Source: Botryllus schlosseri
Taxonomy: Eukaryota
DNA length: 64,000 nt
Assembly: GCA_051294905.1 (NCBI GenBank)
Contig: CM119379.1
Location: 22,072,001-22,136,000 of the forward strand
Direction: 5' to 3'
The position numbers and the translations under genes are program-made. Position 1 is the first letter of the stretch, and the number at the start of each line of letters is the position of its first letter. Shown here piece after piece: positions 2,188 through 36,800 of the stretch. Under the pieces are notes generated by a model. That model was given only the letters and a program-made list of their open reading frames with translations, did not search any database and was not told where the DNA came from.

Positions 2188-4562
2188 GTGATAATCACAT
2201 CAGTAAAAACATTACAGTCAGGCACCATGCTACGGAAGAGAGTGATTAATATTTCTCTTTCATAAACTCAACTCCTGTTAGCAAGCGCTAACCGCAATGC
2301 TTCGTTGATATAGACATATCGGGCACATTAAAATGCTCCCCCTACGAAGAACAATTGCGACGTATGAGATATTCTATTTAGGCTACCGAAAGCTTCTAGT
2401 AATTACATAAGTGACCTCATCGCATATACATCGTTTGTTCTGCATGTATCTATGTTTCCAAAGACTCCAGTGGGCTTCATAGAGGATATGCGATGATGAA
2501 GCAGATCATGCGACACAGTTTGTTTTCGTTCCGACCAATGATAATACCGCGTATTGCGTCTTGGAGTGATGCTCTGAATGTATTTACCTTCCGGTTTCAC
2601 GTAGGCCTACGCAGGTCACATATGCATTGTATTTGGTGCGGACTGACACCTGACTTGATAACCACTCTATAATCTATTTACAATCGCCGATTTCAAAGAA
2701 TTTTCATTGTACTTTAGGAAGGTTATTGATGGGAAATGCCACCCTATTTCTCCCCATGTAGCATAGATCCCGCATTCTTATCAAATAGACTACGATACTT
2801 CCTTCGCCGTTTGCCAACCCCATAATTGTACTGTAGTGTCATTAGGAGTACTGTACTCCTAATACACATATAAAACTGCTTATGTTTGTTTATATCAATT
2901 TTATTAGGGGTTATCAATTCTCAAGGGACTCTTTAGTTGTTATGCTGAGCGTGCCCATTTTAAAGAAATCACTTCCCGCGGTTCTCGTGTTCGGCATAGC
3001 CCAATCATGTCGTAGCCGTAGCGCATTATATAACGCAGTCGATATTCTTGAGCGATGACTTGGTGACGAAACAGAAGCAGAATCCAGCCCCAACGACGGC
3101 GGTTTCGAATCGGTGCAAATGCGCTATGCTATGAGTCGCCAGAGTCGGTAGAGTCGATTGAATAATCGAATGACTCAGGTATGCATGCCATACATACATA
3201 CAAAAGGCGTGGTTCATCGCTTTTATATGCGAAGTTATGGTGTCAAATGGGCACATACATATATATACTCCTTTCGCACACCGGCCTACAGTAATTTTAC
3301 TTATATTGGTCGAGTCGGACATATCAACAAGCTGGTGTGGCTTCCTAAATTTTTGTCTGAGTCATAATGCTGTCCAGTTATCAACAATACGCAGAGCCTA
3401 GTCATCTTCCGCAATGGATTTTGGAAGGACAATTGCGCAATCGTCCTCATCCAAAGAAAGAACAAAACGAAGCGGGTTATAACAGTTATAGCCTATATAA
3501 ATTATAACATATGGATATTATAAAAATTATAATTAGAGACCGACCTATTATTATCAGTTCGCCGATAATATCGAGTCGATATCAGTTTTTGAAAGGAATA
3601 TCGGTATCGCCCATTAGAGGTAAAAATACCGGGAATTTTTGTAATGTCACAACATGGCTAGCATAGGATGTCAGAGAAGTAAAATATGCGACTGTTATAC
3701 TGGGAATACTGATCTATTTGTTATCGCTTACGGGCAGAAGCGGTCAAGTAGAAGTAACGTAACGTTTCTATGCAAATAGAAGTAGAAGTGGCGATTTCCA
3801 AGTATGTTAAAAAGTAATTATTTTATAGGCTTGATTTTACCTAAAAAACTAAAAACTATTAAATTACCGAGCAAAATCATAACCACTTGAGTAACTTGTG
3901 CATGTGCATGTAGGCTAAACCTACTCGAGTACTCTTATGAAGTACAAGTAGGCTATACATCGTTTCTGACCACCCCTACTAACAGGTGTCAAGATGAAGC
4001 CTTTGTAGTCAATTTCAAGTCCAAGCACAGCTGCAAAGCCGTTCAAGCAAATGTCCGAAGTTTTGGAAACGCGCGTTAAGATGGACCAGTGATTCCCAAC
4101 CGCGGCTCCAAAGTAACCTTCTTGCGGCTCTATTTGAACCTCTAAATATGCCATAAAAATATAATACACTACAGTTGTTATTGTTTCTATGAATAGTTAT
4201 AGTCAATGTATGTAAATGAATGCTAAAAAAGGGATATTGGTTATGTCTAAAGCCGCCCAAGGCCGCTTCCGTAAAAAAGAATTTTTGCAAACTGGCGTCA
4301 AACCAAGACAAGGATATATCTTGAGTTCTGCTGGTCAAAGGCAGACCTTTATATATCGTCTCTGTGAAGAGTACATCTTGACACACTTTTACTAACATCA
4401 AAATAACGGCTCATAGTTAGTATAAATTGCAATAAGTCCGATATTACTTAGCGTATAATCCTCCGAAAACCTGTGCATGAAGTGCCGGAATCACGTGGAA
4501 TGTATGAGGAGCAATCACATAACGACATAATAGTATGTTGTAGTAATGGTATGCATTTTCAG

Positions 4563-7500
4563 ACTGCTGTCATCTGGGCCGAATACTTGTATGAAATTTC
4601 CAAACCGGAAAAAAGATATGACCTACCATTACCATTTTTAACGAATTACCTCCGGGAGGATGAGTTAATACCTTTTCTGGATTCAATAGTGGTATAAATT
4701 ACATAACAATATGAAATAGCTTATTTCCAGCTGCATAAGTACCAGTAAACGTCCACCAAAATTTCTGTGATGTGATCGCATTCGCAGCAATACACCATTG
4801 CTTCGATCAATTTGACCCTGCCAATATATCTTATCGGTAAGGTAACTTATACTTTGTTCCGGAAGATAAGTTATACCTTTTCTGAATCTAATAGTCATCT
4901 ATTTTACACCCAGACTAGAGACAACTCATTTCGGGGTACACAAGTTACTCTAAAATCCACCTTACCATGTCGTATTATCCCTACAAAGGCCAATTAACAT
5001 TCGTTTCACGCAACTCGACCATGCCAATATATGTTATCGATAGGGTACCTTAAATTTTGTTCCGGGAGATGAATTATACCTTTTCTGAATCTAATAGTCA
5101 TCCATGTTACACCCAGACTAGAGACAACTCATTTTGAGGTACACAAGTTACTCTAAAATCCACCTAAATATGTCGTATTATCGTTACAGAGGCCAATTCA
5201 CATTCATTTTACGCAATTTGTCCATGCCAATATATGTTATCGGTGGGGTAACTTAAACTTTGTTGCGGGAGATGAATTATACCTTTTCTGAATCTAATAG
5301 TCATCTATTTTACACCCAAACTAGAGACAGCTTATTTCGAGGTACACAAGTTACTCTAAAATCCACCTAAATATGTCGGATCTCATCGCTCCAAAGGGCA
5401 ATTCACAATTGCTTCACACGATTTCACCATGTCAATATATCTCATTGGTAGGGTAACTTATACTTTGTTCCGGAAGATAAGTTATACCTTTTCTGAATCT
5501 AATAGTCATCTATTTTACACCCAGACTAGAGACAACTCATTTCGAGGTACACAAGTTACTCTAAAATCCAGCTAAATATGTCGTATTATCGCTACAAAGG
5601 CCAATTAACATTCGTTTCACGCAACTCGACCATGCCAATATATGTTATCGGTAGGGTAACTTAAACTTTGTTCCGGGAGATGAATTATACCTTTTCTGAA
5701 TCTAATAGTCATCTATTTTACATCCAAACTAGAGACAGCTTATTTCGAGGTACACAAGTTACTCTAAAATACACCTAAATATGTCGGATCTGATCGCTAC
5801 AAAGGGCAATTCAAAATCGCTTCACACGATTCCACCATGTCAATATATCTCATCGGTAGGGTAACTTATACTTTCTTCCGGAAGATGAGTTATATTTTTC
5901 CTGAATACGCTTCGTTTTGTTACCCTACCAATAGGATATATGGACAAGGACATGGTAAAATCGTGTGAAGCGATTGTGCGATTGTGCATTGCCGCAGAAT
6001 ACGATTATATCACACACATTAACGTGAATTCTGCGGGTCGTTGTGTACCTTGAAATAAATTGTATCCAGTTTGGGTGTAAAATAGATGACTATTAGATTC
6101 AGAAAAGGTAAAACTCATTTTCCGGAATAAAGTATTAGTTTCCCTACCAATAAGACATATTGACATGGTGAAATCACGTGAAACGATTGTGAATAGCCTT
6201 CTGTAGCAATCAGATCCGACATATTTAGGTGGATTTTCCGGTTACTTGTGTACCTCAAATTAAGTTATCTTCAGTTTGGGTGTAAATTAGATGACTATTA
6301 GATTCAGAAAAGGTATAACCCATTTTCCAGAATAAAGTACAAGTTACCCTACCGATAAGATATATTGGCATGCATGGTAAAATCGTGTGCAGCGATTGTG
6401 CGTTGTTGCAAAATGCGACCAGATCCGACATATATAGGTAGGTTTTAAGGTTACTTGTGTACTTTGAAATAAGTTGTCTCTGATTTGGGTGTGAAGTACA
6501 GGACTGTTAGATTTAGAAAAAGTATATCTCATCTTCCGGAACAAAGTTTAAGTTACCCTACCGATAAGATATATGGACATGGTCAAATCACATGAAACGA
6601 TTGTGAATAGCCTTCTGTAGCAATCAGATCCGACATATTTAGGTGGCTTTTAGGGTTACTTGTGTACCTTGAATATAGTTGTCTCTGATTTGGGTGTGAA
6701 GAAGATGACTATTAGATTCGGAAAAGGTATAACTCAACTTTCGGAAGAAAGTATAAGTTTCCCTACCGACAAGATTTATTGACATGGTAAAATCGTGTGA
6801 AGCAATTGTGCATTGTCGCAAAATGCGATCACATCACATACAGTTAGGTGAATTTTGTGGACGCTTGTGTACCTTGAAATAAGTTGTATCCAGTTTGGGT
6901 GTAAAAGACATGACTATTAGATTCGGAAAATGTATTACTCATCTATCGGAACAAAGTATAAGTTACCCCACCGATAACATATATTGGCATGGACAAATTG
7001 CGTGAAACGAATGTTAATTGGCCTCTGTAGCGATAATACGACATATTTAGGTGGACTTTAGAGTAACTTGTGTACCTCGAAATGAGTTGTCTCTAGCCTG
7101 GGTGTAAAATAGATGACTATTAGATTCAGAAAAGGTATAATTCATCTCCCGGAACAAAATTTAAGTTACCCTACCAATAACATATATTGGCATGGTCGAG
7201 TTGCGTGAAACGAAGGTTAATTGGCCTTTGTAGCGATAATACGACATATTTAGGTGGATTTTAGGGTAACTTGTGTACCTCGAAATAAGCTGTCTCTAGT
7301 TTGGATGTAAAATAGATGGCTATTAGATTCAGAAAAGGTATAATTCATCTTCCGGAACAAAGTATAAGTTACCCTACCGATAAGATATATTGGCAGGGTC
7401 AAATTGATCGAAGCAATGGTGTATTGTTGCGAATGCGATCACATCACAGAAATTTTGGTGGACGTTTACTGGTACTTATGCAGCTGGAAATAAGCTATTT

Positions 7501-7651
7501 CATATTGTTTTATAATTTATACCACTATTGAATCCAGAAAAGGTATTAACTCATCCTCCCGGAGGTAATTCGTTAAAAATGGTAATGGTAGGTCATATCT
7601 TTTTTCCGGTTTGGAAATTTCATACAAGTATTCGGCCCAGATGACAGCAGT
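4563..7651. mobile_element. Foldback-type element with long modular inverted arms of ~203-bp tandem units and 8-bp TSD ATTTTCAG
   Basis: 4563-4820 is the near-identical reverse complement of 7394-7651. Left-arm units recur at 4821, 5024, 5227, 5432, 5635 and 5840; about 7 complete inverted units lie in the right arm; the arms meet near 5905-5915. ATTTTCAG occurs at 4555-4562 and 7652-7659. No transposase ORF. Confidence 0.92.
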
Positions 7652-8599
7652 ATTTTCAGTTCATTTCAATGCATAGCACTCGCCAATCTGCGTGTATCAA
7701 TGCTCAAAATAGCCTATATAGAAACTATAGAAGTCTATGTGCAATATGTCTATGTGCAATATGTGCATGTGCTGTGCATGATGCTTTTGAATTAGCCCGA
7801 TGGTGAGATCAGAGGTAGGTTAGCTACCGTTAAATTTTCGTTAAGTAGCCTACTTGATTGTTTTCATGCGGCTCCAGCTTCATGCGTACCCGGAAGATGG
7901 ACTCGACATGCTGCTCCGACATATAAAAAGGTCGGGAACTACTTCTAAACGGCTGAATATATATGGATTATCTGTGAAGGTGATAGATGTTGGCTTCATC
8001 AATGCATATTGCACAATTGTTGCGTATTAAATGAATTGCACCTCGCTATACTGATCGCATAAAACGTACACGTTTTATATCTTCAGGTCAGGGATATCTA
8101 TTAGGCTACAACTCTAGATATCCCTGCTTCAGGTTGGTTGGTTGAATTGTACTGTATTTTGATATGAAACGATGCAACAAATACTGCATGCAGTGTATTA
8201 AAATGTAACAAACACATATAGGGTTCAAATAGTCCGTAATTCTTCAAATACAATACTAAGCCAGACATCAAGGACTGAAACCCTATTTGCACTTGATAAA
8301 GCTACACCACAAAACAAGAGGAATTAAACGCAAAAAGCTTTTAGCCGAAGAGAAATTCATTTATCGAAAAGCTAGCAACGCTCTGAAGGCTGAATCCACA
8401 AATCAATGTTTTGGTGGCCGATACGCCGTTATATGAGCTCATTGACGATTGTTACTCCGTAGCTCGTCATTATTTCACCATAATCACCCATCTTGTCTTG
8501 AAACGAACGAAGTACTGTTTATTGTGTCATAATAACCTAACGATGAGAATTGCGAACGGGAGTATTTTACGTGCAATTTCTACTTTAAATAGGCTTTTC

Positions 8600-9250
8600 G
8601 AAGTACAGAACTTCAATATTGCAGCAAAAAATACGTTGATATTGCCAAATTTATTCCACTGGAAGCTTTTCGACTGGCTCTCTTCAGAAGTGAACGCCAG
8701 TAAAAGAGGTTAACCAAGTTCGAAAGATTAATAATTTTGTCGTTGTGACGTAATAATGACAAGTACACATAGTCGATTGCGGTACAGCACACAGATGTAA
8801 AACAGCCGAATGACAAAACAACTCTCATGGAAGATTCCCAGCGTGTAGAGATGTTCCTTTGAACTGCAGCTTTATGGTGGTTGATTCAAGGACCTTTAAA
8901 TGAAAAAGAGAACGAGACCACGAGCAACTATGGAATACTGATCGTTATTGTAATGTTTTGCACACTCTGGGTGTTTCAATAGGTGCTGTCTGATGGTATA
9001 ATTACATGCTGTTACTTGGTCATAATCACGCATGGTAACTATAGGTGTATAATATATGATGTGAACGGCGGTACCTACTTTTTGCCTTGATCTCGTAATG
9101 AAATGCCGAATTACAACTTGTTCAATGTTCGTACAACATACATACACTCCATACCAAGCATTACCTCTGGAATTAAGTGCCCAATAAACTGCTTTTTGGC
9201 GAAAATGCAGGTCAACCTTCCCCTATTTTATCTTCCTTATCCACAACATC
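8600..9250 (-). mobile_element. Penelope-like retroelement remnant (GIY-YIG endonuclease C-terminus plus terminal-repeat region)
   Basis: Minus-strand frameshifted translation TIRQHLLKHPECAKHYNNDQYSIVARG / RSLFHLKVLESTTIKLQ / KEHLYTLGIF, with a degraded YVVRT upstream. This resembles the PLE endonuclease end as I recall it (SAIGQHLL.NP.CA..Y....FSI...ARS.FHL.VLE...IK...KEFVY.L.LF). A hammerhead motif follows directly downstream. Confidence 0.75.
8655..8694 (-). ncRNA. Minimal type I hammerhead ribozyme motif
   Basis: Minus strand: uucacuu CUGAAGA GAgccagUC GAAA AGCU UC cagugga. Complete core, 2-bp stem II, palindromic stem III (AAGCUU), 6-bp stem I with a mismatch at the 1.1-2.1 position. 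Predicted cleavage between 8662 and 8661. Confidence 0.75.
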
Positions 9251-9689: not shown

Positions 9690-10179
9690 AATGCATCACT
9701 AATTACGCCACAAACCTCCTATATGAAGATAACAGCGTAAGTGTGAAAGTTTAAAATGCGAATATCTTAAAAACCTGACGTGCCAGCACAAAAATACAGG
9801 CATATTCCGAATCAGGGGAAAAACTCTATCAGAATCAAGGCGCGGAGCCTAAATAAACCTGCAACGCTTGGGAAGAGTTTCTTGAGTTGTGTGTTTCACT
9901 GCCCTTTTATGATAAATCATCTATATTCAGACGTTAGCGAAATTGTTACGCAGATCATATGGCGAGGAGCCTGGATAAACCTCCAACGCTTGGGAAGAGA
10001 TTCTTGAGTTGACCTCGGTCAGACGCGAACCCGCAATCTATTTGTGTTGCAGCTGTGGAAATGTACCAGTAGAGTACGCAATCTCGTCATAACGATCACG
10101 CCGTATATAAAAAAGACACCGATTGGCAGATCATTTTATTTCGTGTGTAAGCGCGCGCAACATAAAACAAACGCTTCTG

Positions 10180-13100
10180 TCACAACCCCGAATTCGTGTA
10201 TAAACCTCTCGAAGACCACGGCCCCGACCTCAAGCCCGACTCGTTACGCGCACGCGCGCTACCCATCGTCCTGCTCACGTCTTCAAAGTTCAACTCCTGC
10301 GTCCACCTGAACAAGTCCTTCACCTCCTGGTCCTCTATCTCGCTCTCCCTCCCGCCCGCCGAAGGAAACATCGCGCGCGTGTCGACCCGCGAAGGCTGCG
10401 GAGCCGGACTGAGTTCTGTCTCGTCGAAATCCGGTACGTCTCCGGTTTTGGACTGCATCCGGGCGCGGTCGGCTTTCACGGCGATGGTGGCGTCGCCGCG
10501 CTGGTTGTTCTCGGCGTAGTCGGCCGGCGAGTCGAGGCCGTACGTCTTGCGCATTTGGTGAACGCGGCGCCTGGCTTGCACGGAGCGGCGCTTGGATTGG
10601 GACGATCCCGTGACTGCGCGACGGGAGAAGTTGGCTTGCGGCGCGCTGATTGAATCCCGCGGGTCTCTGTACGTGAAGAGACTCGTGGAGGTACATGAAT
10701 TCAGTGTGCAACTGAATCATATATTCGTATTGAAGTAAACCCGAATGCTTTCGACGGACACTCGTCAGGTTTAATCGTCAGTAACTAGTAGCGAATTCTT
10801 AATCAATTCTCCACTGGTGCTGACGATATCTCCTCACGAGTGACAGCCGAATATATTCAATATGAATTTATTACTCAATAGTCTCTGCGAGGAGGATTTC
10901 ACCATCTCGCCAGAAATATATCAGAGGCGGTCAGTGGCGAGGTACTTCAACTTTCTCGGAGTATTTCAGCAGGTTTTGCCTACATTCTTAGTGAATAGAG
11001 AATGTATTCACATCCTAAATATGCTACACTAAAACTGGACCTACCTCAGTATTATACTGCAATATAAATGAAGCAGGACGTTTGAATTCAAATGGCGCTT
11101 GACAAATTAGAATAATCACAAATGGAGTACGAAGGAACGTAGCTTACGTAGGGACGTAGTAGAAATACACATCGCTCAATCAATCAAATTATGAACAATG
11201 AGAAAATAGCGTTAGGTAAGAGATACAACGGGTCTCGTGTCATCATAAATTCATACTATATTTGACGATAATCTTCGCGAATATAGCTGTGGAGAGTGAA
11301 TGGTACATCATCGCTAGAATAAATCTAACGTAGCATAGAATCCAAATTGGTCAATATTAATGGTAGAATTAGGTAGATATCGTCCTCAAAATCAAATATA
11401 CTTACTGAAGTCTTGATATTGCACGAATATGTTGCAGTTGAACGTCCTGCGTCACCGGTCTCGACATTATCGTAGGCATTTGACTTCGTAGTCTATCGCT
11501 CGGCGACTTAGTTTGAAGGTATTCCACGATATCGAACATTATACTTTGCCGTGGCAGTGTCTCTAAAGTGAGCTGGCGCCAGTAGTTTTCCCTGCCTCCG
11601 AGATAGGATGGGGTCTCGTCCACGTTGCTGAGGTACTGAGTAATCAATAAACGTGAGTGTATTGCCTGCGCTTTGCAAATGATTAAAGATGTTGATTCAA
11701 TCACACGATATTCTTAGGGGCCACGATAGAATGAACGAACTTAAGCCGGCATCTTGTATGTAATCTACATCTCCCATGAACTATGTAGGTGGCCAGGGTT
11801 ATGTAAAGACACCTAACAAAGCATCTAATTAATAGTGAGACCGATGCACAAAATAAATCCACCTGCATATAATCTTGCATTGTTGTGACGTCCACTTCAT
11901 CGGTTATCTTGTATTTTTCATGTTGACAAGCATCTATGATCATTTGGTCATAAAACTTTCTATGGCCCATTAACTGGCAAGCATCTGAAGCAGCCTGATA
12001 AAATAACAAGGGTGCAAAACATACTTTTGTAAACCAGGTATGCCTATTTCAAACAAGGAGACATTCACATTTAATAGTCAACAGTTGACTATACTCAGAG
12101 GTGTTTTACCAAGTGTACTTTGTCTACTTCCAGAACTTACTCATGTGGTGAGATTATGGACTAATATCACATATTTAAACCAAACTGCATGCTTTTTACA
12201 TTTTCAATATTTTCAAGTAGAAAGTAGATTATAAATGTAAAATGAATGACTACCTATATCTCACACTAATTGTTTTCAGTGCTAGTTCCGAATTTAGAAA
12301 ACAAGATTTGAGTTGAAATTCTTATATCTACATACATTAAGATCAAGTATTTTCACTTGTGAGCTGCATTAGTTGCATAAATCTTGACCATATATGACGT
12401 TGGATGACATAATTTTTATGAGAACTCAGAGAGCAAAGGAATGGATGCGTCACCAAGAACTAACTTCAGCAAACTTGCAAAACCAATTTCGACAGGGATA
12501 ATATTTAGTATATGCGCTGATTTCCATCATGGGAGTTGGTGGTATGGGTAGTATGCTGGTTCTTTGGCTTGCTGTTTTGGACATTTGAATTTGTGCAGTG
12601 GTTGTTTTGTATGACTGCATTTATAATTTTACATGGTTTTCTGCCCAGTTAGTCCACAGCACTTTGAATATGTCTACATTTTGTCAATATTTGGCAGGCT
12701 TAACAAAAACACGACCAGCACGCAGTTTCACCAGTTCTGGTCTATATCCAATTTTACATCCATCCATTATAAACATACATTTTTATAAATTAGCTGCTAC
12801 AGTAATAAATGTCAAGAAATCTTACTTCAGTTGCTGGCTGTATAGTTCGCCTTCCAGAAATATATTTCATGCCGACTCCAACCAGATATATTTTAAAAAC
12901 TATAATAGGAGGGAATTCGGTTCCAGCAAAACGAAGACGGACCCTCGCTTTTACTGTGGGGTCTTTCAATAAATCTGCTTCCAGTGGGCTTATCTTTCGC
13001 AAGAAATCATAGGTCCAAGACTTTTCCTTAACAAAATATAATAATAAAAACATACTACAATAAGAGCTTAATCCACGGTTCAACTGGACATGAGTAGTAA

Positions 13101-15884: not shown

Positions 15885-18800
15885 TCAAACGGCTTCTTGT
15901 CTGGAGTTAGTCGCCATACTTGGATCCGAGTTAACGCCACTATCATTATCGGGACTCAGCGGGGTTGAGCTCTTACTTTCGGAATTCGGCTCCAAACCAT
16001 ACTGATCTATGAAGGACCCGTCTTCCTCGTATTCGCGAGTGTTACCGTTGCCGAACGCTTCAATCGAATCTCCCCCAACGCTGCTTCCGCGCAAACGAGG
16101 CTGCCCGTTTTGAGTTGTCTCATCTACCTCTTTTACATCATTATCAAGACCGTTGGTTCGCGAGAGACTGTAAAGCAAACACCGGTGATATAGTGTAGTG
16201 ATGACAGGCATAAGATTATATAGTGCTGCAGGTAGTGGATAATTCTTTTCGGTGACGTCACCTTGAAGATTGGTTCGAGGTTTTGAATGACTCTGCAAGA
16301 CAAGTGGATTTAATATTTTCAAATTCTCAGAATCAAATCCAAGTGAAAATTCAAATCTAGATTTGATATCGTATCAGGTTCAGATTGAAGTTATTATTTG
16401 ATGACAGTCCCGCGGAATTATAAATTGAATGAATGGTTCATGATGCAGAACTTCAATATACTCATCATTCTTCAAAGCTTTTCGATTGATTCTTCTTAAC
16501 AGGAAGAATCGTCATTACAAAGGTAAATACAAAATGTGAAATTGAAACGGAGTAGTACGATATAAATTAATATGGCATTGTGACGGACTGAAGAAAAATA
16601 GGGAAAAAGAAAAAAATGTGGTGAAAGAAATCACACCGGAAATTAATAAAAAGAAATGAATAGGGAAAAAAACGGATTCGAAAACCGGGAATCCCCAACC
16701 TTTTGAAAATATAGTGCGATGAATATTCTATTACGAGTAAATTATAGATTATTCCAAATGTTCACGTCCAAATTCAAATCCACCCAATACTGTGATTCAA
16801 CTTATTTGCATAAGCAGAGCTCAATACCTGTATTTCCCGCCCTCTTGACTTTTCATAAGCTGAGCCTCGCTCTTGACCAGTTCCTCTTCTTTTTCGGACA
16901 CTGTGAAAACATCATTGGCCAATAATGCTTCATAATACTTTCTACTATACCGCATCGCAAATCGAATGTGAAACCGGGCTTTTCAGATTGTCGATAGTGG
17001 CATGTAGATAAGCAGGCAGCCGTTTCATGTTTTACGATCCGACAAATGATATTGTGTGCGATACACTCAGCATAGTTTGTTCAAAATTTGATCGTAAAAC
17101 GATCAAGTCGGCCCAATTTGTTATCTTTAACACTTGTCGACATAATATGATATTTTTATTACATCGTTCGCGGAATCTCTTTATTGTACAAATGGGATCA
17201 CATCACTATATATATGACTCAGACAATAAACATCGCTATAGCCGAGCTTTAAGGCCAGTGATATTTCAAGCTCCGCAACTTTAGGCGGATCAATACAGTC
17301 ATACACAAATGCATGTAAAACGCCAACTCACATCTGATACCATAATAACGCCCAAGTTTCCTATCTCCCACGTTTTCACGGCAAACCAGGCGATAGGCCA
17401 GATAGATCTATAAATCTGAGGTCATTGCCAAGAAGATAAGTGAGACTGCCTCCTTCAAGGATTCCAGACATTGTGTCGTCACATACACTATTTTTCGTTG
17501 TATCCGAACTATATTTGCTGTGACAATTAACTGATCAGTAGTGCAAGTTTGTGGGACTTCTTTTTATACAGCTTACGCGATTCTAAGAATCTATCTAGCA
17601 TGATGTTTGAAGCTGTTTACAGGAACTTTATATTGCAGCTTTTTTCTATTTTTCATGCAACATTTTACTGTAACTTGTATCAAGTATTGCGCAAAATGTA
17701 AAGTAAATAGTGATTTAAATTCTCGATATAAAATTATTTCTAGTATGTTTCTATTTATTCTCTTTGATTTGCATAACGAAGAGCTATGTTATGGCATATA
17801 TATCTCAATGTGATCTATGCAGCAACGGTTGGCTTGCAAGCTAAATGCTCAACAACCCGACCCAAGCACGACAGTGCCCAAACTAAATTAGAAGTAGAAG
17901 TATTGCTTGGCTTTTGGCCAAGCCCACACAAACGAAAACAGGTTATGTCTAGTCTTTCGGGGTCAAGTTGATATAGCTCGTTAAACTGTGTGTTTATAAA
18001 AGTGCATTCGTTATTTTACAAGTAAGAAAGGTGGGGTTATCGCTTTGCAGTTTGTATTTTTGCGGAAAATTAATCGCGTATTGCGTTATTTCTTGCTGGG
18101 TACTGGAAAAAAATGTTATTCTCGTCAGGCCTCCGTGAAATTGGGAATAACGAAATCGGACACGGACAGCTATACATGAGCTGACAGCGAAATGCTGTCA
18201 TGTACGTTTGATACCTAATGAACATAAAAATATATGCATGATCAATTGTGTGGCGGCGAAAGAAATGGAACAAGCAGACACCCCAATACCAATCTTAGAC
18301 TTTTGGGTTATACAGAAGAACCTTTCGAGTAAGTCATACACTAATAATTAAAAAAAAACTTTTGTGAATAAATGCAACTTTTTATTGCAACCTTTGTAAA
18401 AAATAAATGCAACTTCCTATGGCAAAAACTTTTGTTAAATATAAGTGCAACTTTCTCGCGATTTTAGTACAACAAAAACTTGCCTTACTGATCACTATAC
18501 AGTACACCTTTTCATATTGCAGCCCTATTATGATGCCACGATAAGAAAGACTTTCCAACTTATGCATAACACTTTACAACCTACGTGATCCCCGTATTAC
18601 ATCGGTACTGCGGTTGTGTTCTATTCTTAAATCATGATTTCAGAGAACTAGCGTTCAGGTTTTCTTGAACCTTGACCCGAAAGGACTGACCCTGTATTGG
18701 AGTCAGTGACTAGTTTCATTTGTCCGCATGTAATTCGGCGGGTAATTCAATAATTGTAATCCTCCGTTATCAGGGGTTGGTTTCATTAGAGTAAAACAAC

Positions 18801-21800
18801 CCGTGAGAAGATCTAACCGTGCGTTTTTTGAGTTTCTGAATTCTATCCATAGTGGTGATCGTGCACGAAAAAATAACATTTTCGAGATATATGCGTCAGC
18901 AGTATCGCATTGGATCGAATATGTGAAGAATAAATAAAGTCAACGTGAGTCGAGTTGAGCAATCGCACGAGTGGGTTTCCTCCATCGGCTTGTTAAACAT
19001 TAAAAACATCCGGTGAATTCTATAGTAATGCGATAATTACCAAGTCTTAACGGGATTGTTACGGCCGTAACGAGCGATTCGTCATAGCAAAAATACATTT
19101 AGATCTGGTATGTACACATCGCATTACTAAAGATGAAGACCAGCCGTTCACTGGCTGGTGGCGCAGATTTTGTTACCGGTATTTCAAAAGCTTTGTATTT
19201 GCGTTTTCATTGCGGGATCACCGAACTTTTTTCAGGAATGATGCAAGGAAAATTTTACGGTAAACGTAGTTGAAGTAGTAAAACTCGTCAGAGTAAATAT
19301 TAGGACACTTAGCGAATTCGAATGGTTGCTTGTGTGACACGTTAAGATTGTCGATTTTCGGGTATTAGAGCCCGGGCAGATATCCTACTCCAATTATCTC
19401 GGTAATGAGGGTAAATAAAGGATTAAAGAGGTATCGCTTCTGTAAGCGGTAACAGTGTATGCTCTCATCGGCCGGGTGATTCAACGCAGAATCATTTTAC
19501 TAAGCGTATATATTTTAAACATTGATTCACAATAAGTGCAATAAGTGGTGTGTTGTCACGCGAACACTGTTTGTATGAATACGATTGTTGAATTAATTTA
19601 TGTTTTTCTCACTGTCCTCTACTATTTTAATTTACACCACGCTCATAAGTTTAATTTGTTATCAATTTGTCATTTGTCAAATCATTTGCGTACAATCTAC
19701 TGACAGCCCATTCAAGTTCTACAAGCATTTCGAAATTACTGCCTTTGCAGATCGGGTGGCGAGAAGGGGCCGAGAAAATCCCACTTCAACGGGGATATAT
19801 ACTCCGCCCTACTGGTGTTGTGGCAGCGAATGTTGTTACTTAACCACATCGTATAATAACTCATGTGAAGTAGTTCCCAGCACAGGCCATCGTCCAAATT
19901 GAAGATGAAGATCCAGCATGTTTCGTCTAGTGGCCGCCAGTGTTGGGGCTGATGTACAATTGCACCGATGAAGTCTTTTGTGCCAATTGGTACGTTTTGG
20001 AATTTCTAATGCGGGATTTCATACGTGGCGGGGAAGGGTTCCACGATCTGTGCTATTTGTTAATCACTATTTAATATGCCGGGTCCATTCGGATATATGA
20101 TAATTAATCTGTAATTTTACAATAGCTCCAAGGTCCAAGGAAGATGGTCCTATTTTCATAAGATGATCCCGTCGACCGCAACTCCATCGAGCAACTTCGT
20201 AATGAGCTCGCGTAACGCGTAAGGATGGCACACTCCAAACGGTATCTTGAAATTTAAAGCCGCAAAGCACCCAACGATACGGCTAAATTCGGCACGGACG
20301 CCTATTTTGTCGTTCTACTTTGCTTGATCAAACAGTAATTCAATCATACATGACATAGGATAAAAGCCATGAGTGGCGACGCCATCTTTTCGTAGGGTCT
20401 TGGCTTGGGTCACAGACAAACATAATTATAGAATGGGAATTTAAAAATCGGAAATCGTTGAGTTGAAATTGAGAATGGCGCTATTATTTCCGGGTTGACT
20501 GTATTACTTTCATAAAATATATGTTATTTCTCTAGTATGCCGCTACAACAATGAGCTGTTTGGTCCTGGAATATCACGCAGGGGATTCCGGAAATACTCT
20601 GACACACATAAAGAAGGATTTCGTTTCGCAATTATGCAATCTTTCTAAATTCGTAAATATCATCTTACCTGGATAATGTCCGCCTCTGCGTCTTCGTATG
20701 AAACAAACAACCAACAAGATCAGTACCACCAACGCGATTATACACAGTATCATGATCAGCCAAAGCTGCCCAGCGACGCCACCGCTCGAAATGGGGTAAC
20801 CTGTCAAAAAATAACCGTTATTCTTTCAATGTAATCACTACAGTAATGTTTATTCATTTTTTCGGATGACACAAAGCATTTTATAAACGAAAATATGAAG
20901 CCTCAGTTTACGTTTAATTTTAAACAAAAGTAGTCCAACACCAGATATCCCTTTCTATATGATACCATACGAAACCACAAAGCGGCAGTTAATCGAACTA
21001 ATATTGACATTATACAGCGACGGAATAATTCATTGGAATGATAACATTTCATTTTATGCCATCAAGTCAAATGTGAACTAAATGTTCCTATAATAGCATA
21101 GGTGCAGAACGAAAGTTTCAAGTATAGCTTCAGTGTATAATATGCTCAACCCCTCAATGCATCAGTTGGTATGATGAATTGCGAGTATGGGAATGGAATT
21201 TGAACACGACCATCTGCGATCAAGATGATTCAACGCTGTTCCATTATGTTGTTTTGGTATTATATATGAGATGAGAGCATTGTCGGACGTCGGTGTGCGT
21301 TATAGATGCCTAAAACCTCGATTTGAGTGAACTATCATGACAGGGGTCATGTTATCCTGAAATCTTTACGTTACTGTTATGAGCGATGCGTCTTGCAAAG
21401 GAGAGATCTATCTAAAAACCGCAAGGGCAAGTATCGTGGTCTACCTCAGATGCTCAATTCCACATAACACCCAAACCCGTTAAAATCGAGATTATGCAGG
21501 CCTACTTGCTACAGAGTTGCTTGATATTATGCCGCGTCTCCGGATTAAATTGAGTTTTTCCTGAATCCAGTAAGGCAGAGCCTGATTTTATTGCCAACTG
21601 TCAGTTGAGTTAAAGGGAAACCTATTTTCAGGAGCAGAGATAACCCCATTTTAACATTTTAATATCACAGTGTCAATAAGTCTAATTAGAACGACAAATA
21701 AGTAACAAGTCGAATGATGAATGCATGGAGGTTGGAGGCAGTGCGCGCAGTGAGTCAATTTACGCGATACATTCGAGGGTCAATAAATTTGTCGTCGGTT

Positions 21801-24800
21801 CCATCAGTAGCGAGACTTTCCGCATCACCATAAATATACACTGTTATGGAAATGTATGTAGGCCCACACGAAATCAAAACCTACTTCAGAATTCAGAAAC
21901 CCCGTGGTCGGGGTGTCGATCAAATATATCACCAGACTTGTTAGCGACTGAACAGCATTTGCGTATTTTTGTTTTTCAATTTACAGCCAATCACTATCAT
22001 CTGGCGTTTTTACTTCTCTGCGTATATTAAATCGCTAATTTTGGTCATTTGATTACTTCGTGGAGAAAAGGCTGTGATTGACTCATGCTTTAGCATTGTT
22101 ATAAAGCGTGCATTGCATACCTTCCAACGCCCCTATGAGCCTACGTTCATTTGTACTCCATTCTAGTTTGATAAGCATTTGGATTGATATGCCGTTTGAT
22201 TTATACCGCATATTATAAGCAAACGAGAGTTGTCATCAGCCGCTTTCGATATCATCCTTATGCTTCACTATTTTATGAGCATCACGACTCACGAGGCCTT
22301 ACCAGGAATTTTTAGTATTTCGTTTGCCTTCACATCACGGAATGCGCTCAGATAAAAACATTCTCTTACATGGGGTTACATTCACAAATCGTGAATTAGA
22401 CTCTATCTATGATATGTACCGAGTATAGTGGGATCCACATTTAAACACATATGCAAGCTACCACATAGGTGGCTTAAAATTCCAAAGCAGTTTCACATCA
22501 TCGTCGCGGTATGTTACCTCCGCGGACAGCCCCACACCTCGCACTCACACGTCACAGCTGCGGCGCAAACGATCTTGCCCGGTGATGACGAAATCGCATC
22601 AACGCCGACAGTTGAAAGCTTTTCGCCTGTTTACAATATTCTCTCTGACAGATGAGCGATTCTCGTAAAGGTGGCTAGACTTTGATTTTTTTGCGGAAAT
22701 TTATCGCGACATAAAGATGCATTTTACGGCTCACCTACAAAAGAATTGATTTCCTGTCCCGCCCGCTACACGGTGGGGTGTAAGAATTTGCTCTTCTATT
22801 TTGGCTACGGTGTAAAAACGATGTAAATCGTCTTAATACGAGTCAACAAATAACGCGGGATATTTATTTTAGTGAGTTACTTATCCCCAAAGTATTCCAA
22901 AATCGCTTCTTCTGCGTTTGACTTTTTTGGACGACAGTTATATATAAATAGCCCGGGAAACGAAAGACCGAAGATACGAATCGTATAGTTGAGATATTTA
23001 TCAACGCAACTAATCGGATCATGAGCGGATGAAACGAGCCGATATCGCGAACATCAACGCAAAATGCAGTCAAGGTTGCTGTGGAAGGATGCCAAATTTC
23101 TCCCAGCTAGTACATAGATTCCTATATCGTGGTCATCGAACGAATACCCGAGTGCAGGAAGCAAAGACAGTGGGATTGAAGAAGACACAATTAACGCACC
23201 TCGCCTCAATTATGGTATTATTAGCGTTCAATACCAAACCGACTGGAGGTCAGACAGACTTTCGTGGCAGAGCTTATTCGAAAGATGAAGGAAGTACACA
23301 TGCGCCGATGGCGAACATCGACAATGATGTAATACATAGGATACGTGCGTTAACGACCCAGGCCGTTATAACCGTCCTAGGCCGCGGTTATCAGAGGCAT
23401 TTAACTGTATTTGAAGCGTCCATACACGGCCACATAGAATTTGGATTCCCGCCACCAAAGCATCGACCGTTGGGTGAGAATACGATTTGTATTCATATCT
23501 TTGAATTTTGATGGCGTATTGCAACTTCCTCAACCAATGTTGTCAACGTAACGAATACTTTTCAATGAATTTTGTATGATTGATAGCAATAATCGAAATT
23601 GTGCATCGTAGACGTTGCGGGGCAATAGGATTCATTAATTATAGCCTACTCCCAAATGTACGACTTCTAACATTAATTTGATTGGGTGGGTCAAGTCCTC
23701 TACATATATAGTTCATACCCTTTATAAAGTGGTTTCAGTCGACAAAAGATTGTCTTGGGCAGACGGTAACGATAACGATCAACAAGATACCTGTACAATA
23801 AGTGTACATGAAAAGCCACGTCCCAGTATTTAACTATTGGCATGGCGTAAAAGTTTAGTATACGTAAAACATATCACTGGAATGCGACGGCTGGATATTG
23901 AATATAGAAGCTTATCGAACGGTGATGTCATCGCATACCTCGCATTTGATACTGAGAAAAATTATCCCGGACGTGTGTATTGAGATTAGGAAACAAGCAC
24001 GCTGGTATGATAGGTCAAACAAAATCTGCGTTACTAGAGATGTTTTGAACCATGTAATGTGTACGGTCTGATCCGTTTCTATATGAATATTGAAGTCGAA
24101 TTATAGCAACAAAAAGCATTTGCAACTAGAGTTTTCGTCAATTTTTTTTTATTGTAAACAAGCACGGCGACGACTCCATAGTAAATAGTGTTTCAAGACA
24201 TCTTGGGGGTAGTTGTATCAGATAGTTGGTGCATCTGACTCCTATTGCGAATCCCGTGTATAAATAATCGTGGAGCATTATCAACTAAATCCAGTTTATG
24301 GCCTTCCTACAAGGGGCGGTGCGAATGTTCTACATCAGCGGTGGCCAAACTTTTCGGCTAAAGGGCCACATTTCATTGACGAACCATCGCGCGGGCCACT
24401 ATCCGCGCTAAGCGCGAAAAATACTCAAAGTTTATAGGTCAATCTTACTGTTACTTGAGCATATTGCGGGTCTGCAGTATATTGCTGGGCTCAGTTTGCA
24501 ATAACTGGACGATTCGGCGCCTGGACATATCGATAACGAAAGCTTCGGCCAACATGAGTCAATAATTTTATGCCTATGTTTCATCGTCGACGGTATTTCT
24601 GCGAGCGAAAACGCAAGGTCGCATCTTAGACGACACTTTCTCTCGTAATTGCGATCATAATTAGACTTAATCTGGTACATTGGCCGTTCTTTTATTTTGA
24701 GGAGGGGGTAACAATATTAAAAGCAAGAAATCGAGTGACAACATATTGCGTGTAGGGTGAAGAAATTTTCACTTTGGATAAATCTACCGCAGAACATTCT

Positions 24801-27800: not shown

Positions 27801-30800
27801 CGCACGTTCAACCCTCAACTCGTTAAATAAACAATGTTAATTCATTGGACTTATTGTCCTATGCATGGCGTAAGTAAATTTTCAAATCCATGAAGTGTGG
27901 TTCTTTGTGGTTGACTTCGCAGCCAAGCTGGTATGATGCATTTATTCTCTCCATGAGTTGAGGAATCGTGCGCGTATGTTCGGTGATGCGCATCGAAGTG
28001 CTTTGATAATTAAATTAGCCGAAATCGACGAAAACAAGAACTGCGTGTGGTTTGTAATAATATCAATACATTACGGATAACTACCACCGATTATTGCATT
28101 TGGAATTGTTTGGCGTAATTCAACCCCATTATGACTTTAGCCTATTTGAGGTGTCAAGGCACGCTACGCTGCATAGTATAGTGTAATTATAGAGTCGATA
28201 AAAGATTGTATACGTGCATTCGTTCACTTCAAATTGAGATCTTTCCTTCTACTACAATGCGTGGATAATGGATATCCGATGCATAATCCTAATCGCTCGC
28301 CCTTTCCGTTTTCAGGATCATTGGAGATTTCCGACGTGACGCCTCTAGCACATAACTGCTGCCCCCGAGGTGTCAGGAAAGTGACTCTGAAACACAGCTG
28401 TTCCAACCTTTATCTCACAGTAGACAACTTCGGCCAGGCACGTGCGTGTCAGCTGACGCAGGAAGGGCGAGAGCCCGGCGTCCTGCGTAAAAGCACGCAC
28501 TGCGTCAACGGAAGGAACCTGCACTCCTGCCGTGAGACTCCTTACCTTTACCTTGACTCTCTGAAAAGCGTACGTTCCGTAAACGACACGCCCGTGGACG
28601 CAAATCAGTACAAACTTCGTTTTGAAAGGCGGAATATTCGCAAGAGAGGCAAAAAGGTGATGTACGCTGTAGTCGTGCGAAGCACTTGGGAGATAAAACT
28701 TCGAGCACAGAACAGCATCCTTAGAAGGGCGGTCTCGAAGGCTTGCTTGCAACTGTGGCAAAAATCCATCGACTCTCTATTTCAAAGAGCTTTGTCGGAA
28801 CATAATACCCGGCAAAGACACATACGTTTTGCGACGGTATGCAGTAGCGATCCTGTAGTCGTGAAGGCCGCCATTACTGGTGCTTTTCATAGGGATGATT
28901 TCACGAATGCAGTCGAAGCCGCGTGGCGACAGCAAACTGTTATTGGCCTTCTGGGGACTTCGATGCCGTGGACTCACATGAGTGATACTCACAAGGGCGT
29001 GTTCGCGGTTATAGCGTCTAGAATCGTGAGGAATTATTTACTGGAGTCGCTGCTGCGCGCTGGTAACACACATTGTGTGCGTCAGTCGCAATGGAGCCGG
29101 TTGCCTGCCGAAAATAGGAAATCCCTTCTCGAAAAGACCCTCACGCTATCTTGGCTTCAACGCCAAGTAAACGCACGCGATTTGATCATATCGAGTATCG
29201 AGCAATACCTCGACTCCAGAACTACAACATTCGTCGTAAATGAAGTCCGTTGATTAATAACAATGCGTAAAATACGCGTGTCATCAATTCCCGTGAATCA
29301 AATCCAAATTACAGGTAAGCTTATGCAATGCATGCTTCATTGCAAAAAAATAAACGATCATATCATTACTATACTGTCAAGGAACTGTTCGCGGGCCTTT
29401 ACCAGTTACGGAAACTGAGCCAAAGTCATTTTAAGCCACCTTTCAACTCTTTGACTGATGAATTGGAAGTAGTATACTGGTGTTACGTTACAATGCTATT
29501 ACTAAGGGTCTGCGTTAGAAGCAATCATGGTCACTCCGTTGTTAGTAAAATCCCGGCGTTTGCCGGCGTTGTTTTATTGCGCGCAAATAAACGAAATGTC
29601 AAATGTACCGTGTTTTCTTTACGCTGCGCGACAATGGAAATCGTGCTGTAAAATTATTTTTATGTTTGACGACAAATTGAACTAGCATCTGTAAAAAGGA
29701 CTCCGTGTGTACCGATTGGATTATTCTTTTACGGCTTGCTGAAACTCGCATTTACGACACTTGCGTTACGACTCTTACGAGTGTTGATTGAGAATGATGG
29801 AGTCTCGCGGCAATGCTGTTAGGTGCGATTACACGGTGAGTCTGAAACTACCCAAAAACTCTGCCCGAATTTGATGGGATAGGCTCCAGATGCACATTCG
29901 AACGCTTGTGCCGGTTTTCCCTGTCATACTTTGCCGTACTGGTACGCGGACAACAACTTACACGTTTTGCAACTTCATATAATTAATATTCAATATAAGT
30001 ATAGTCTTGATGAGGGGATAGCACTTTGATGCATTAACATCATTAATTACCACAAGCAGGATGGAGCGCTTGAGATAATCGGTGGCTCTAATACAGGGGC
30101 GGGCAACTTCTTAATCCGGCGGGCCGGATAGGGGAACATGAACATGAGCCGGGCCGGATTCCTGACATTTTTTTATGATTTCAGCATAGTGTCCTATATG
30201 GTGTCGACACAGGCAAATCTCACGCCTCAGTGAAATTGTATCACGTCACAATTTCACTGAGGCGTGAGAATTGCCTGTGTCGACACCATATAGGACACCA
30301 TGATTTCACGGTAACTCCCACCGTGGGAAGGCGCCACAGATCCGCTCAACCTACCTTGCACTACCCTTTGTACATACAATTCAGAGACGCACACATTCCT
30401 GCAGTTGGGCGACCGATTCACGAGCGAGCCCAAATCGGTGATATGAATGTGATTCGAAATCCGATCATATTTGGCAGATAGTCGCGCCAAGCGCGAAAAT
30501 TTTTGGCATATATGAATGAATTTGATCAATGGTATTGGTGAGTGTATGAGCAAGTGGTTTCTTCGAAAATTTACAGCACGTATGATTATAATTTTGAACA
30601 TTGATCATGGCAGTGGCGGCTCGTGACAATATCGGGTGGTGGGGCAAGGGCTGCAAGCGACTTTTTATCAAGATGACGTCACAATGGCGTTTTCCAACGT
30701 AAACAAGTAACTTAATGATGGTGCGGTAACATGAATTTCCCGGCAACAGTGATTTTAACGTATGTGCCACGAGAGGTCCGCTGGTGAGCTGTGACTTGAA

Positions 30801-33800: not shown

Positions 33801-36800
33801 TTCCCGAATTTGAAGAAAACCTACTTATCGCCTATACAACAGGAGTTCACAAACTAGGGGTCGCGACCTCAATGGGGTCGTTTGCCTATTTTCTGGGGAC
33901 GCGGAGACGAACATTAAATACCGATGACTATTAGAAGAATGTCATACAAGCGGATGCTATCGGCGGCTCATTTCTGAAGATTTTAGTTCATTTTTCAAAA
34001 TACAAGAAAAAAAACAAGCGAACCCGGCAAACAAGTTATCAGGTTAGTCGAAGCGTCATTTAAAGTGCCGCATACTATAACACAAGGTTGGTAGCTGGTC
34101 ATTAGTACGAAGATTAAAGTGTCGGGGGTTTACCTTCTCGCCATCTCATCCGCGAAAGTCGTGTCTTATAAAAAGTCTAGAAATGGGCCGTGTATTAGTC
34201 GGCAGCTACGGAATAAAGAGGAAGAAAATCGGCCTGCTGTAAATGACCACTAACCATATAGTAGTCGACAAACACCATCAATACACCACTAACAAAGTGT
34301 AGGGAGCATGGAAACTAATAGGACGGCTATATTTCCTTCTGGGAAAATTACAAATGACCGGTAGTGTTATGTACTAACAATATAATACATGAACAGGACA
34401 CACGTAACAATCACGTTAATAAACACTTAGTAATCAGCACGCCAAATTGAGAGGCGAGGTCGTGGACTTTTTTCAAATCGAAATTTGAGGTCGCGACCAT
34501 AAAAACGTTGGGAGCCCCTGGCCTATAGTCTACAATCGTAGCGAAAAGATGGTACGCGAAAGCAGAACCTAACTCAGAATAAAATCGTGGTTATAAATCC
34601 TATGCATGCCCACGTGAATACATTCATCCGCCACAACGTGCGAACATCATTTGGATTAAAAATGTTGTGTTCGATTTATACCGTATGGCAGGGGTGTCAA
34701 ACATACGGCCCGCGGGCTGCATCCAGTTTCATCCGGCACGCGACGCGATTCTGAAAAATGCCTGTGTTATCCAGCACATTTCTGACAAATGTTGAAATTT
34801 TTTGTACGAAATACTTTCATTAAATATTCCCTCAATGTAGAAAATATCGAGCATATGTTCATGTTCGTAGGCCACATTACAACCATCCTTCAGCGGTGTT
34901 ATTGTTTCACTCTGGTAACCAATAGGAACAAGTTGCTGCCATTGATACCAATTTCGACAAGGCAAAAAGGGCACCTTGATTTCGCAGTTGAATGGGAAAA
35001 TGGACCAAAAGTAGTAATTTATTATAGCTGTGCCCACCGTAAATACTATTTTATTCAAATCCAAATTTTTCGACGGCAATAACTCGCTTCCACTGGTTGG
35101 AATGCAGCCAAATTTGGTGAACATCGTTTCTATAGACAACCTAACTTTGTTCTCCTGTAGCAATGCGGCTACTGGCTGGAATTGAACCAAATTTGGCGTG
35201 TAGGCTTAAATTAGGTAACCTAACAATTTTACAAGTAGCCAGTACAATTTGAGAAAAAAAGTCATTTTTTAAGACGCCTAGTGTATATAACTATTCAACC
35301 GGCCAATCATCGTAACTTTGCCTATTCCATTGTTTGCGAATAGAGGTGTTGATACCTTGATAGAATAATAAAACCCTATGTTAATGAATATTATGTTAAT
35401 AAGCTTGATATTTGAGTATTTAGGCTAAAAGACAAGGGCATGGATTTTGAGGTAACATTTTGGAATCATTAGACTGGTCCGGCCCGCGAGTGCTCTGAAG
35501 GTTTGAACCCGGCCCGCGACGCGATTTGAGTTTGACACACCCGACGTATGGTGTAAGTCTGAGGTAGGTTCTGGTTTTGCGTACAAGGGGTGTATATTCA
35601 CATCCGTATATCACGGGTGTATCATTGTGTCGTACACATCCTTCTCGCTAAGAGTACGTACGCGCACGGCATAGCCTTGACCTACCTTTGGTGAGAGGGT
35701 CTATCGGGTCCGAAGTACTGATACCATACTTGTTTTTCGCCAGCACTCGCAACTCATACGGTCCATTCAGACTTGTCTTTGTGATCGTGAAATTGTACAT
35801 GCCGCGACCCGTGGCAGGAATGCGCTTCGAAGTAGTCCACACAACATTTGCTGATTAATGTAAAATCAAAAATAACCGGACAGAAACAAAACTGATCCTG
35901 GTTTCTGATCGCTTCACCCAGTGGCGGGCAACAAACGGCCCGCGACGGGGATTTGAGCGGCCCGCAGACAGTTTCTACCCCGAAACAGAAATTTGAATCT
36001 GAAGCATGTTTTAGTTGGCCAGGTCTGAAAACATTGCAAATTTTATGGGTCACTGAATGAATCCAAGTCTGCCAACCTGAGAAAGTTGGCCTTAAAATTA
36101 CCTGCTCTGTTCGGGTCTACATACTTTTGCCAGCAAAAGGGTTTCTACGTCCGACCGACATGCAGCCGTAGTTGAAAGAACTTGTTGACAACTTTGATCT
36201 ACCACAGATGTCTCATTGACTTCAACAGCTATTGAAGTATGTTCCGGTAATAAATTGATTAAATAGTTTTTTGGTCTCTATTTTTCAAGCGTAAATTTGA
36301 CATTAAATGCGATTAAATTAAATACGCGATTAATGTATCGATTCAGAAATCAGACCCGCCAAATACTTCAGTTTCCCATATCAGGCCCGTCTACTGGAGA
36401 AGTTGACCCCTTGGCTTAACCACTGTATACAACCATGATAATTTTGTGATTTCCAAAACTTTACCTGCGTCTGTGATCCGGTGTTGAACGATATATCCGG
36501 ATATTGGAATTCCATCGTTTTCGTCTCGGGTCGAATCTCTCCATGTTACAACGAATGAGTCGGAGTTGGCGGACACCGTAGCTACCGGTTTTTCCGGTTC
36601 TAAAGGATTTCGTTAAGAGCGAGCGCGTGCACATTAATATTATTATAGGACAGTGTTACTTCGCGGAGCTACTGTCTTGGCAGTCATTCGCGAGCAATTT
36701 AACCCGATTCCTGCGATTGTCTCCACACATAGCGTAAAAACGAAACTGGTGTTTGGAGTTAGACCGTTCAGGTAAATGTATCCATCCTTCGTGTATGACG

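Follow-up and report, generated by a model that had tools for sequence, protein, structure and literature searches.

The locus described here lies within a 64,000-nucleotide stretch of the Botryllus schlosseri genome (assembly GCA_051294905.1, contig CM119379.1, positions 22,072,001 to 22,136,000 of the forward strand), hereafter the window, and all coordinates are counted from its first letter. An initial annotation, made from the letters alone, had proposed a hidden gene at 28234-29253, antisense within an intron of an L1-type gene, and had read its product as a divergent FGF-like (beta-trefoil) protein with a novel C-terminal domain. The locus holds a two-exon gene, 23089-23473 plus 28316-29253 on the plus strand, with a 440-aa product whose predicted fold is a beta-trefoil broken by a large helical insertion. 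The features of this nested gene, followed by those of its host, are:

22636..22860, no strand assigned: conserved non-coding block, candidate cis-regulatory element, ~100-300 bp upstream of the TATA box
22941..22948 (+): TATA box TATATAAA, putative core promoter, read from sequence and conserved with the comparison contig L001 (see below)
23021..23032 (+): upstream open reading frame (ORF) of 3 codons (ATG AGC GGA TGA) in the putative 5' UTR, identical in L001, with a possible regulatory role
23089..23473 (+): coding exon 1, with the start MPNFS, the N-terminal hydrophobic segment and trefoil strands 1-3; ORF and donor conserved in L001
23474..28315 (+): single intron, GT...AG, phase 1, 4842 nt; donor and acceptor read from sequence
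28316..29253 (+): coding exon 2, with strands 4-11, long helix, linker, helical bundle, strand 12 and stop; structure predicted by homology to the Styela model
29349..29354 (+): AATAAA, putative polyadenylation signal, ~100 nt past the stop, read from sequence
15924..16097 (-): host L1-family cytoplasmic exon with FIGQY-type ankyrin-binding motif; Pfam Bravo_FIGEY at 30 bits (cut-off 23.8)
20658..20792 (-): host L1-family transmembrane/juxtamembrane exon, downstream border of the host intron; tblastx with L001 and Styela
35723..35839 (-): nearest host L1-family FN3 exon, upstream border of the host intron; tblastx with L001 7319-7435, the neighbouring FN3 exon matching Pfam fn3

Coding potential and selection

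The ORF as first described was recovered on re-reading the sequence, at 28234..29253 (+) with 339 codons and with the peptide strings quoted earlier. It ranks second by length in the window, the longest being a 1126-aa ORF at 59822-63202, and the base composition of the whole window, taken on both strands, leads to a chance expectation of ~1e-4 to 2e-3 open frames this long. The GC content is 0.47 over 28001-29000 and ~0.38 just upstream, in line with the description of the ORF as GC-rich. A search of 5.8 billion proteins returned two homologues (48% identical over the whole exon, E~1e-93), one of which sits on a 9.6-kb contig, L001, from a second species, and this contig served for comparison. 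Between the window and L001, identity by codon position was 0.60, 0.71 and 0.36, a pattern that applies equally to the strand-rich and helix-rich halves. Because synonymous sites are saturated (pS 0.82) while pN is 0.33, the gene is judged to be under purifying selection, dN/dS having been among the checks that the initial annotation had recommended. This signature and the splice site described below indicate that the ORF is the terminal exon of a real, selectively constrained protein-coding gene. The ORF is present once in the window, no terminal inverted or direct repeats bracketing it were found there, as had been noted for inverted repeats, and a tblastn search against phage records gave no match.

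Gene model and first exon

A polypyrimidine tract and a CAG acceptor end at 28315 with two bases of a split codon left over, which puts the intron in phase 1, as had been claimed, and the acceptor falls at the identical codon in L001. The first exon, which had earlier been sought without success, was located at 23089-23473, where a phase-1 donor pairs with this acceptor. It lies within a plus-strand ORF upstream of the ORF at 28234-29253 (23029-23511 in the window, 2475-2885 in L001), and L001 is collinear with the window over this upstream ORF and the host FN3 and transmembrane exons. The start context ATGCCARATTTCTC at 23089 is common to both, as are a hydrophobic segment and, after it, a well conserved stretch of ~55 aa, and the donor is G|GTGAGA in the window, with G|GTAAGT as its L001 counterpart. 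The spliced coding sequence is 1323 nt long, i.e., 440 codons and one terminal stop. Exon 1 shares 54% identity with exon 1 of Styela in tblastx; the Styela clava RefSeq model places its exon junction at exactly the residue predicted for the window, and the Clavelina gene model has the same phase-1 intron position.

The block at 22636-22860 (225 bp) has 78% nucleotide identity with L001 over 232 nt (E 1e-46), and is conserved although the neighbouring coding exon has saturated synonymous sites. It contains stops in every frame, it matched no Rfam family when considered as an RNA, its fold was not significant (z -1.4 and -1.2), and no counterpart was detected in Styela. The block is probably a cis-regulatory module of the nested gene.

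The host gene

Pfam searches of the host's minus-strand exons found I-set at 37 bits, fn3 at 24 bits (just below the 25-bit cut-off) and Bravo_FIGEY at 30 bits. This domain content, an ectodomain of Ig I-set and FN3 repeats, one transmembrane segment and a cytoplasmic Bravo_FIGEY region, identifies the host as a gene of the L1/neurofascin/NrCAM family. Since its minus-strand exons flank the ORF at 20658-20792 and at 35723, from which further FN3 exons run upward, the nested gene lies antisense in the ~15-kb intron that separates the transmembrane exon from the last of the FN3 exons, and the claim of a hidden antisense gene in an L1 intron holds. I-set, fn3 and Bravo_FIGEY domains are likewise found in the Styela host gene model, and the Styela orthologue is antisense in the same FN3-to-transmembrane intron; as it occupies the same intron, the nesting is common to the window, L001 and Styela, i.e., to three species, which answers the earlier suggestion that conserved nesting be looked for in related species.

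Predicted structure of the protein

For the AlphaFold2 (AF2) model, Styela residues 96-464 served as query in an alignment of 18 rows, which included the two window exons; the model reached a pLDDT of 86.7 and a pTM of 0.86. An earlier AF2 run on a 3-sequence alignment of exon 2 had a pLDDT of 41 and was discarded. The elements of the model are:

Model residues 14-185: eleven strands
Model residues 186-224: 39-residue helix
Between 186-224 and 237-359: short basic linker, lower confidence
Model residues 237-359: helical bundle of roughly six helices
Model residues 363-368: last strand (trefoil strand 12)

The Styela orthologue is thus predicted to be a 12-strand beta-trefoil of three four-strand units, with the final strand at the extreme C-terminus. 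The model has the twelve strands of the beta-trefoil class and matches solved trefoils over most of the domain, and language-model features of the N-terminal domain pointed to beta-trefoil families only, favouring no single family among them. As strand 12 of the trefoil is also the final strand of the chain, the helical region of ~175 aa is an insertion between strands 11 and 12. The earlier proposal of a beta-trefoil in the N-terminal part is therefore upheld by the model, the strands that had been aligned to FGF2 fall on the equivalent model strands beta5 to beta7, and the protein does contain the basic stretch and a helical tail, the secondary structure being taken from structure models. 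The proposed novel C-terminal domain fared less simply: the helical part indeed resembles nothing recognisable, but it is not a separate domain, being inserted before trefoil strand 12. For this insert a wide structure search gave no structural match in the top 50, and a protein-atlas feature search had an uninformative best score of 0.61. ERAP1_C came up for the whole ORF in the protein-atlas feature search with a score of 0.68, below the useful level, and was set aside.

Distribution and genomic context of the family

When 1.84 billion cluster representatives were searched exhaustively with an HMM, 13 proteins were recovered at E<=1e-3, and a word-indexed search for homologues, run with the family alignment, brought no further members. 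The only named members are XP_039271674 (LOC120346089) of Styela clava and XP_076801320 (LOC143445854) of Clavelina lepadiformis, both listed as 'uncharacterized protein'. No family sequence matched any Pfam model at E<=10, the query set being window exon 1, exon 2 and six relatives including three full-length ones. By these searches it appears to be a small family, so far seen only in tunicates. Styela XP_039271674 is a full-length homologue (profile E 1e-92) with the same two exons, phase-1 intron position and L1-gene intron, and shares 42.6% identity with the spliced window product (E 3e-122). Clavelina XP_076801320 is likewise a full-length homologue (profile E 6e-34) with the same two-exon structure and phase-1 intron position; in contrast to the window gene, this copy falls in a sister clade, and its host is a proprotein-convertase gene rather than an L1 gene.

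In a maximum-likelihood tree the family falls into two clades, both supported at 99/98. Clade A consists of the window protein, P0001, P0002, Styela, P0004 and P0005, and clade B of Clavelina, P0006, P0008 and others. Wherever the context of a clade B gene is known (Clavelina, L004 and L007), it is antisense inside a gene of the subtilisin/kexin-type proprotein convertases (Peptidase_S8/P_proprotein). L004 and L007, contigs of other samples, apparently come from an organism other than Clavelina, since their identity to Clavelina in a conserved convertase exon is ~89%. Two of the nestings are placed as follows, the convertase gene being given first:

L003, 4459-16499 (-) with 10001-11681 (+): clade B gene nested in a convertase gene
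L004, 976-13385 (-) with 4124-8900 (+): clade B gene nested in a convertase gene

The two clades could be either paralogues or relocated orthologues. The two stable antisense nestings, one in an L1-type gene and one in a convertase gene, offer a clean case for the study of how nested genes persist and move.

In P0001, from a contig of SRR25569784, the reading frame runs 35 codons beyond the end of the window, L001 and Styela proteins. Elsewhere in the family the C-terminus shows strict conservation, owing to its role as trefoil strand 12.

Features of a probable secretory-pathway protein

An N-terminal hydrophobic segment is present in all full-length members, and N-x-S/T sequons occur in all members. 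Cysteine is conserved at four alignment columns, in no fewer than 93% of rows; the trefoil and the insert hold two each, and these near-invariant pairs suggest two disulfides. On such features the protein is most likely one of the secretory pathway. The hydrophobic segment would direct it there, the cysteines would pair to form one disulfide within the trefoil and one within the insert, and the trefoil may be a module that binds a glycan or protein partner.

Most members have R-x-K/R-R sites in the flexible linker, immediately ahead of the first cysteine of the insert, and the strongest furin-type polybasic sites of the family are those of the clade B proteins. A furin-type convertase could cut these sites in most family members, and the cleaved chains would remain joined because strand 12 completes the trefoil. 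Processing of the linker would not be universal, since the window protein, L001, P0001, P0002 and P0004 lack R-x-K/R-R; the Styela linker keeps an RKKR site, whereas the window protein has none.

An intracellular protein that combines a trefoil with a helical domain in the manner of IP3R/RyR, fascin or FRG1, with the polybasic linker acting as a nuclear localisation signal, is an unlikely alternative. Of the Foldseek matches that cover the trefoil and helical parts together, the N-terminal regions of IP3R/RyR rank at the top, FRG1 and fascin are among the structural matches, and the Arg/Lys runs of clade B resemble classical nuclear localisation signals. However, these two-domain matches have an overall TM of only 0.2-0.25 with an rmsd above 20 A, and the helical armadillo domain of IP3R/RyR, which are the cytosolic parts of giant channels, comes after the trefoil instead of being inserted within it. 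The hydrophobic segment of all full-length members, the conserved cysteine pairs and the loop sequons also speak against an intracellular protein and favour the secretory pathway.

Comparison with known trefoil families

The model was compared with solved trefoils from several superfamilies, and the structure-comparison scores were:

Ricin-type lectin: 12.9
Symfoil: 12.3
IP3R core: 12.2
BinA: 12.1
FGF10: 11.6
FGF12: 11.5
FGF4: 11.3
Fascin: 11.2
IL-36 gamma: 10.8

Identity in these structural alignments was 5-16% and no family stands out, so that the model is not structurally nearer to FGFs than to other trefoil superfamilies. PF00167 (FGF) and PF00340 (IL1) gave no match at E<=10 for window exons 1 and 2 and the six relatives, and the Ricin-B models PF00652 and PF14200 gave no match for the same eight sequences. 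An 18-row family profile searched against all PDB sequences at E<=10 retrieved no FGF or IL-1 chain, only exportin-5 (E 0.12), and the search of PDB sequences with the single ORF returned nothing meaningful. Signature patterns were also searched for: the PROSITE-type HBGF/FGF signature with its C-x-[FLM]-x-E core had no regular-expression match in 20 family sequences, the IL-1 signature had none in the family sequences, and the ricin (QxW)3 motif is absent, each protein having at most one or two scattered, unconserved QxW. As the HMM, profile and signature tests are negative and no structural family stands out, we conclude that the protein shares the trefoil fold of FGF, IL-1 and ricin while by sequence it belongs to no known trefoil family. 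The earlier reading as a divergent FGF or an IL-1-like protein was thus not confirmed.

Several known systems are nevertheless instructive. Ricin-B-type and fungal trefoil lectins, such as that of Polyporus squamosus (3phz), differ from the family, which has neither (QxW)3 nor a RicinB match. Kunitz-STI inhibitors, water-soluble chlorophyll protein and miraculin were the top-probability single-domain Foldseek matches (prob 0.96-0.99). The Kunitz-STI-type proteins are secreted, disulfide-bonded trefoils, but they are plant proteins without the helical insert, with which the family shares no sequence similarity, and the family has no sign of a reactive loop.

A true but extremely diverged FGF descendant, tunicate-specific in the way of Fgf-L, signalling through FGF receptors and carrying the insert as a lineage-specific addition, seems to us very unlikely. 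The motif alignment of the initial annotation does land on equivalent strands of the model, and the N-terminal hydrophobic segment and basic patches would suit an FGF. The family gene has one intron, in phase 1, just before strand 4, a site that may lie near ici1, the first core intron of FGF genes, and it has none at an ici2-like place. Ascidians do possess a lineage-specific Fgf-L (PMC11733497). On the other side, ancestral Fgf genes had two core introns, ici1 and ici2, compared with the one of this family, and the most divergent Oikopleura Fgfs still score 1e-7 to 1e-13 against PF00167 (PMC11733497), a model that none of our eight sequences matched. The family profile drew no FGF from the PDB sequences, the FGF signature and its CxFxE core are missing, and lectins, IP3R and designed trefoils score equally well or higher in structure. 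Compared with FGFs (PF00167, including ascidian Fgf-L), the family shows ~10-14% identity in structural alignments and no HMM, profile or signature similarity, and it differs from them in its helical insertion of 175 aa, placed between strands 11 and 12, and in its single intron.

The reading of the ORF as part of a transposon or repeat, or as a decaying or chance frame without host function, which its site in a large intron and its want of a known domain might suggest, is effectively refuted by its single copy in the window (high copy number having been named as the mark of a transposon), by the lack of terminal inverted or direct repeats and of a transposase or reverse transcriptase domain, by its conserved placement in this host intron across three species, by its own conserved intron and strong purifying selection, and by a chance expectation of at most 2e-3.

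Weight of the evidence and wider implications

We consider it quite probable that the locus carries an intact, constrained two-exon gene with a putative TATA-type promoter region and poly(A) signal of its own, lying antisense in an L1-family intron, and that it encodes a trefoil with a helical insert which belongs to no known trefoil family. Some points weigh against this picture of the gene and its product. The hydrophobic segment of the window protein is short (~11-13 residues) and lies ~35 residues from the start, so that it could be a signal peptide, an anchor or neither. Furin processing would be inapplicable to the window protein, which has no R-x-K/R-R, and its sub-clade appears to have lost the sites. 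Expression in the window species is read from selection signatures and from the gene models of other species, and the fold was modelled on the Styela orthologue, which is 44-51% identical to the window exons.

The analysis supplies a fold and a complete gene model for a family that is listed only as 'uncharacterized' and covered by no Pfam model. The architecture is unusual in that a large helical insertion separates the last strand of a beta-trefoil from the other eleven, and no prior description of the family or of a trefoil with such an insertion was found in the searchable literature. The case also carries a caution, in that trefoil-like sequence motifs gave the correct fold and the wrong family.

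Secreted trefoil proteins, among them FGFs, IL-1s and lectins, are major signalling and recognition molecules, and given these roles a trefoil family confined to tunicates is therefore a candidate lineage-specific ligand. A more far-reaching version would hold that these are secreted trefoil ligands invented by tunicates, each clade being functionally tied to its host gene: clade B proteins as substrates or regulators of the host convertase, and clade A proteins acting with the host L1-type molecule, for instance through coupled antisense transcription or as an L1 or FGFR ligand. This we regard as decidedly speculative and would give little credence. The initial annotation had itself raised a link through L1-FGFR signalling, and nothing in the analysis supports it.

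Other features of the window

A 24-nt inverted repeat (22096-22119 and 29322-29345) with 83% complementarity and a spacing of 7.2 kb brackets the nested gene, and is judged a chance match because its flanks are syntenic host intron. At 30185-30302, ~1 kb downstream of the nested gene, there is a near-perfect hairpin with 55-nt arms, 96% complementary, and an 8-nt spacer, which may be a foldback or MITE-like element.

The longest ORF of the window (59822-63202, plus strand, 1126 aa) is non-repetitive, rich in Ser, Thr, Asn and Tyr, and has many N-x-S/T sequons; it had no Pfam match at E<=1e-3 and probably forms one large exon of a gene for an uncharacterised extracellular protein. The composition profile also has an isolated GC spike at 10001-11000, where the GC content is 0.53 against ~0.37-0.40 on either side.
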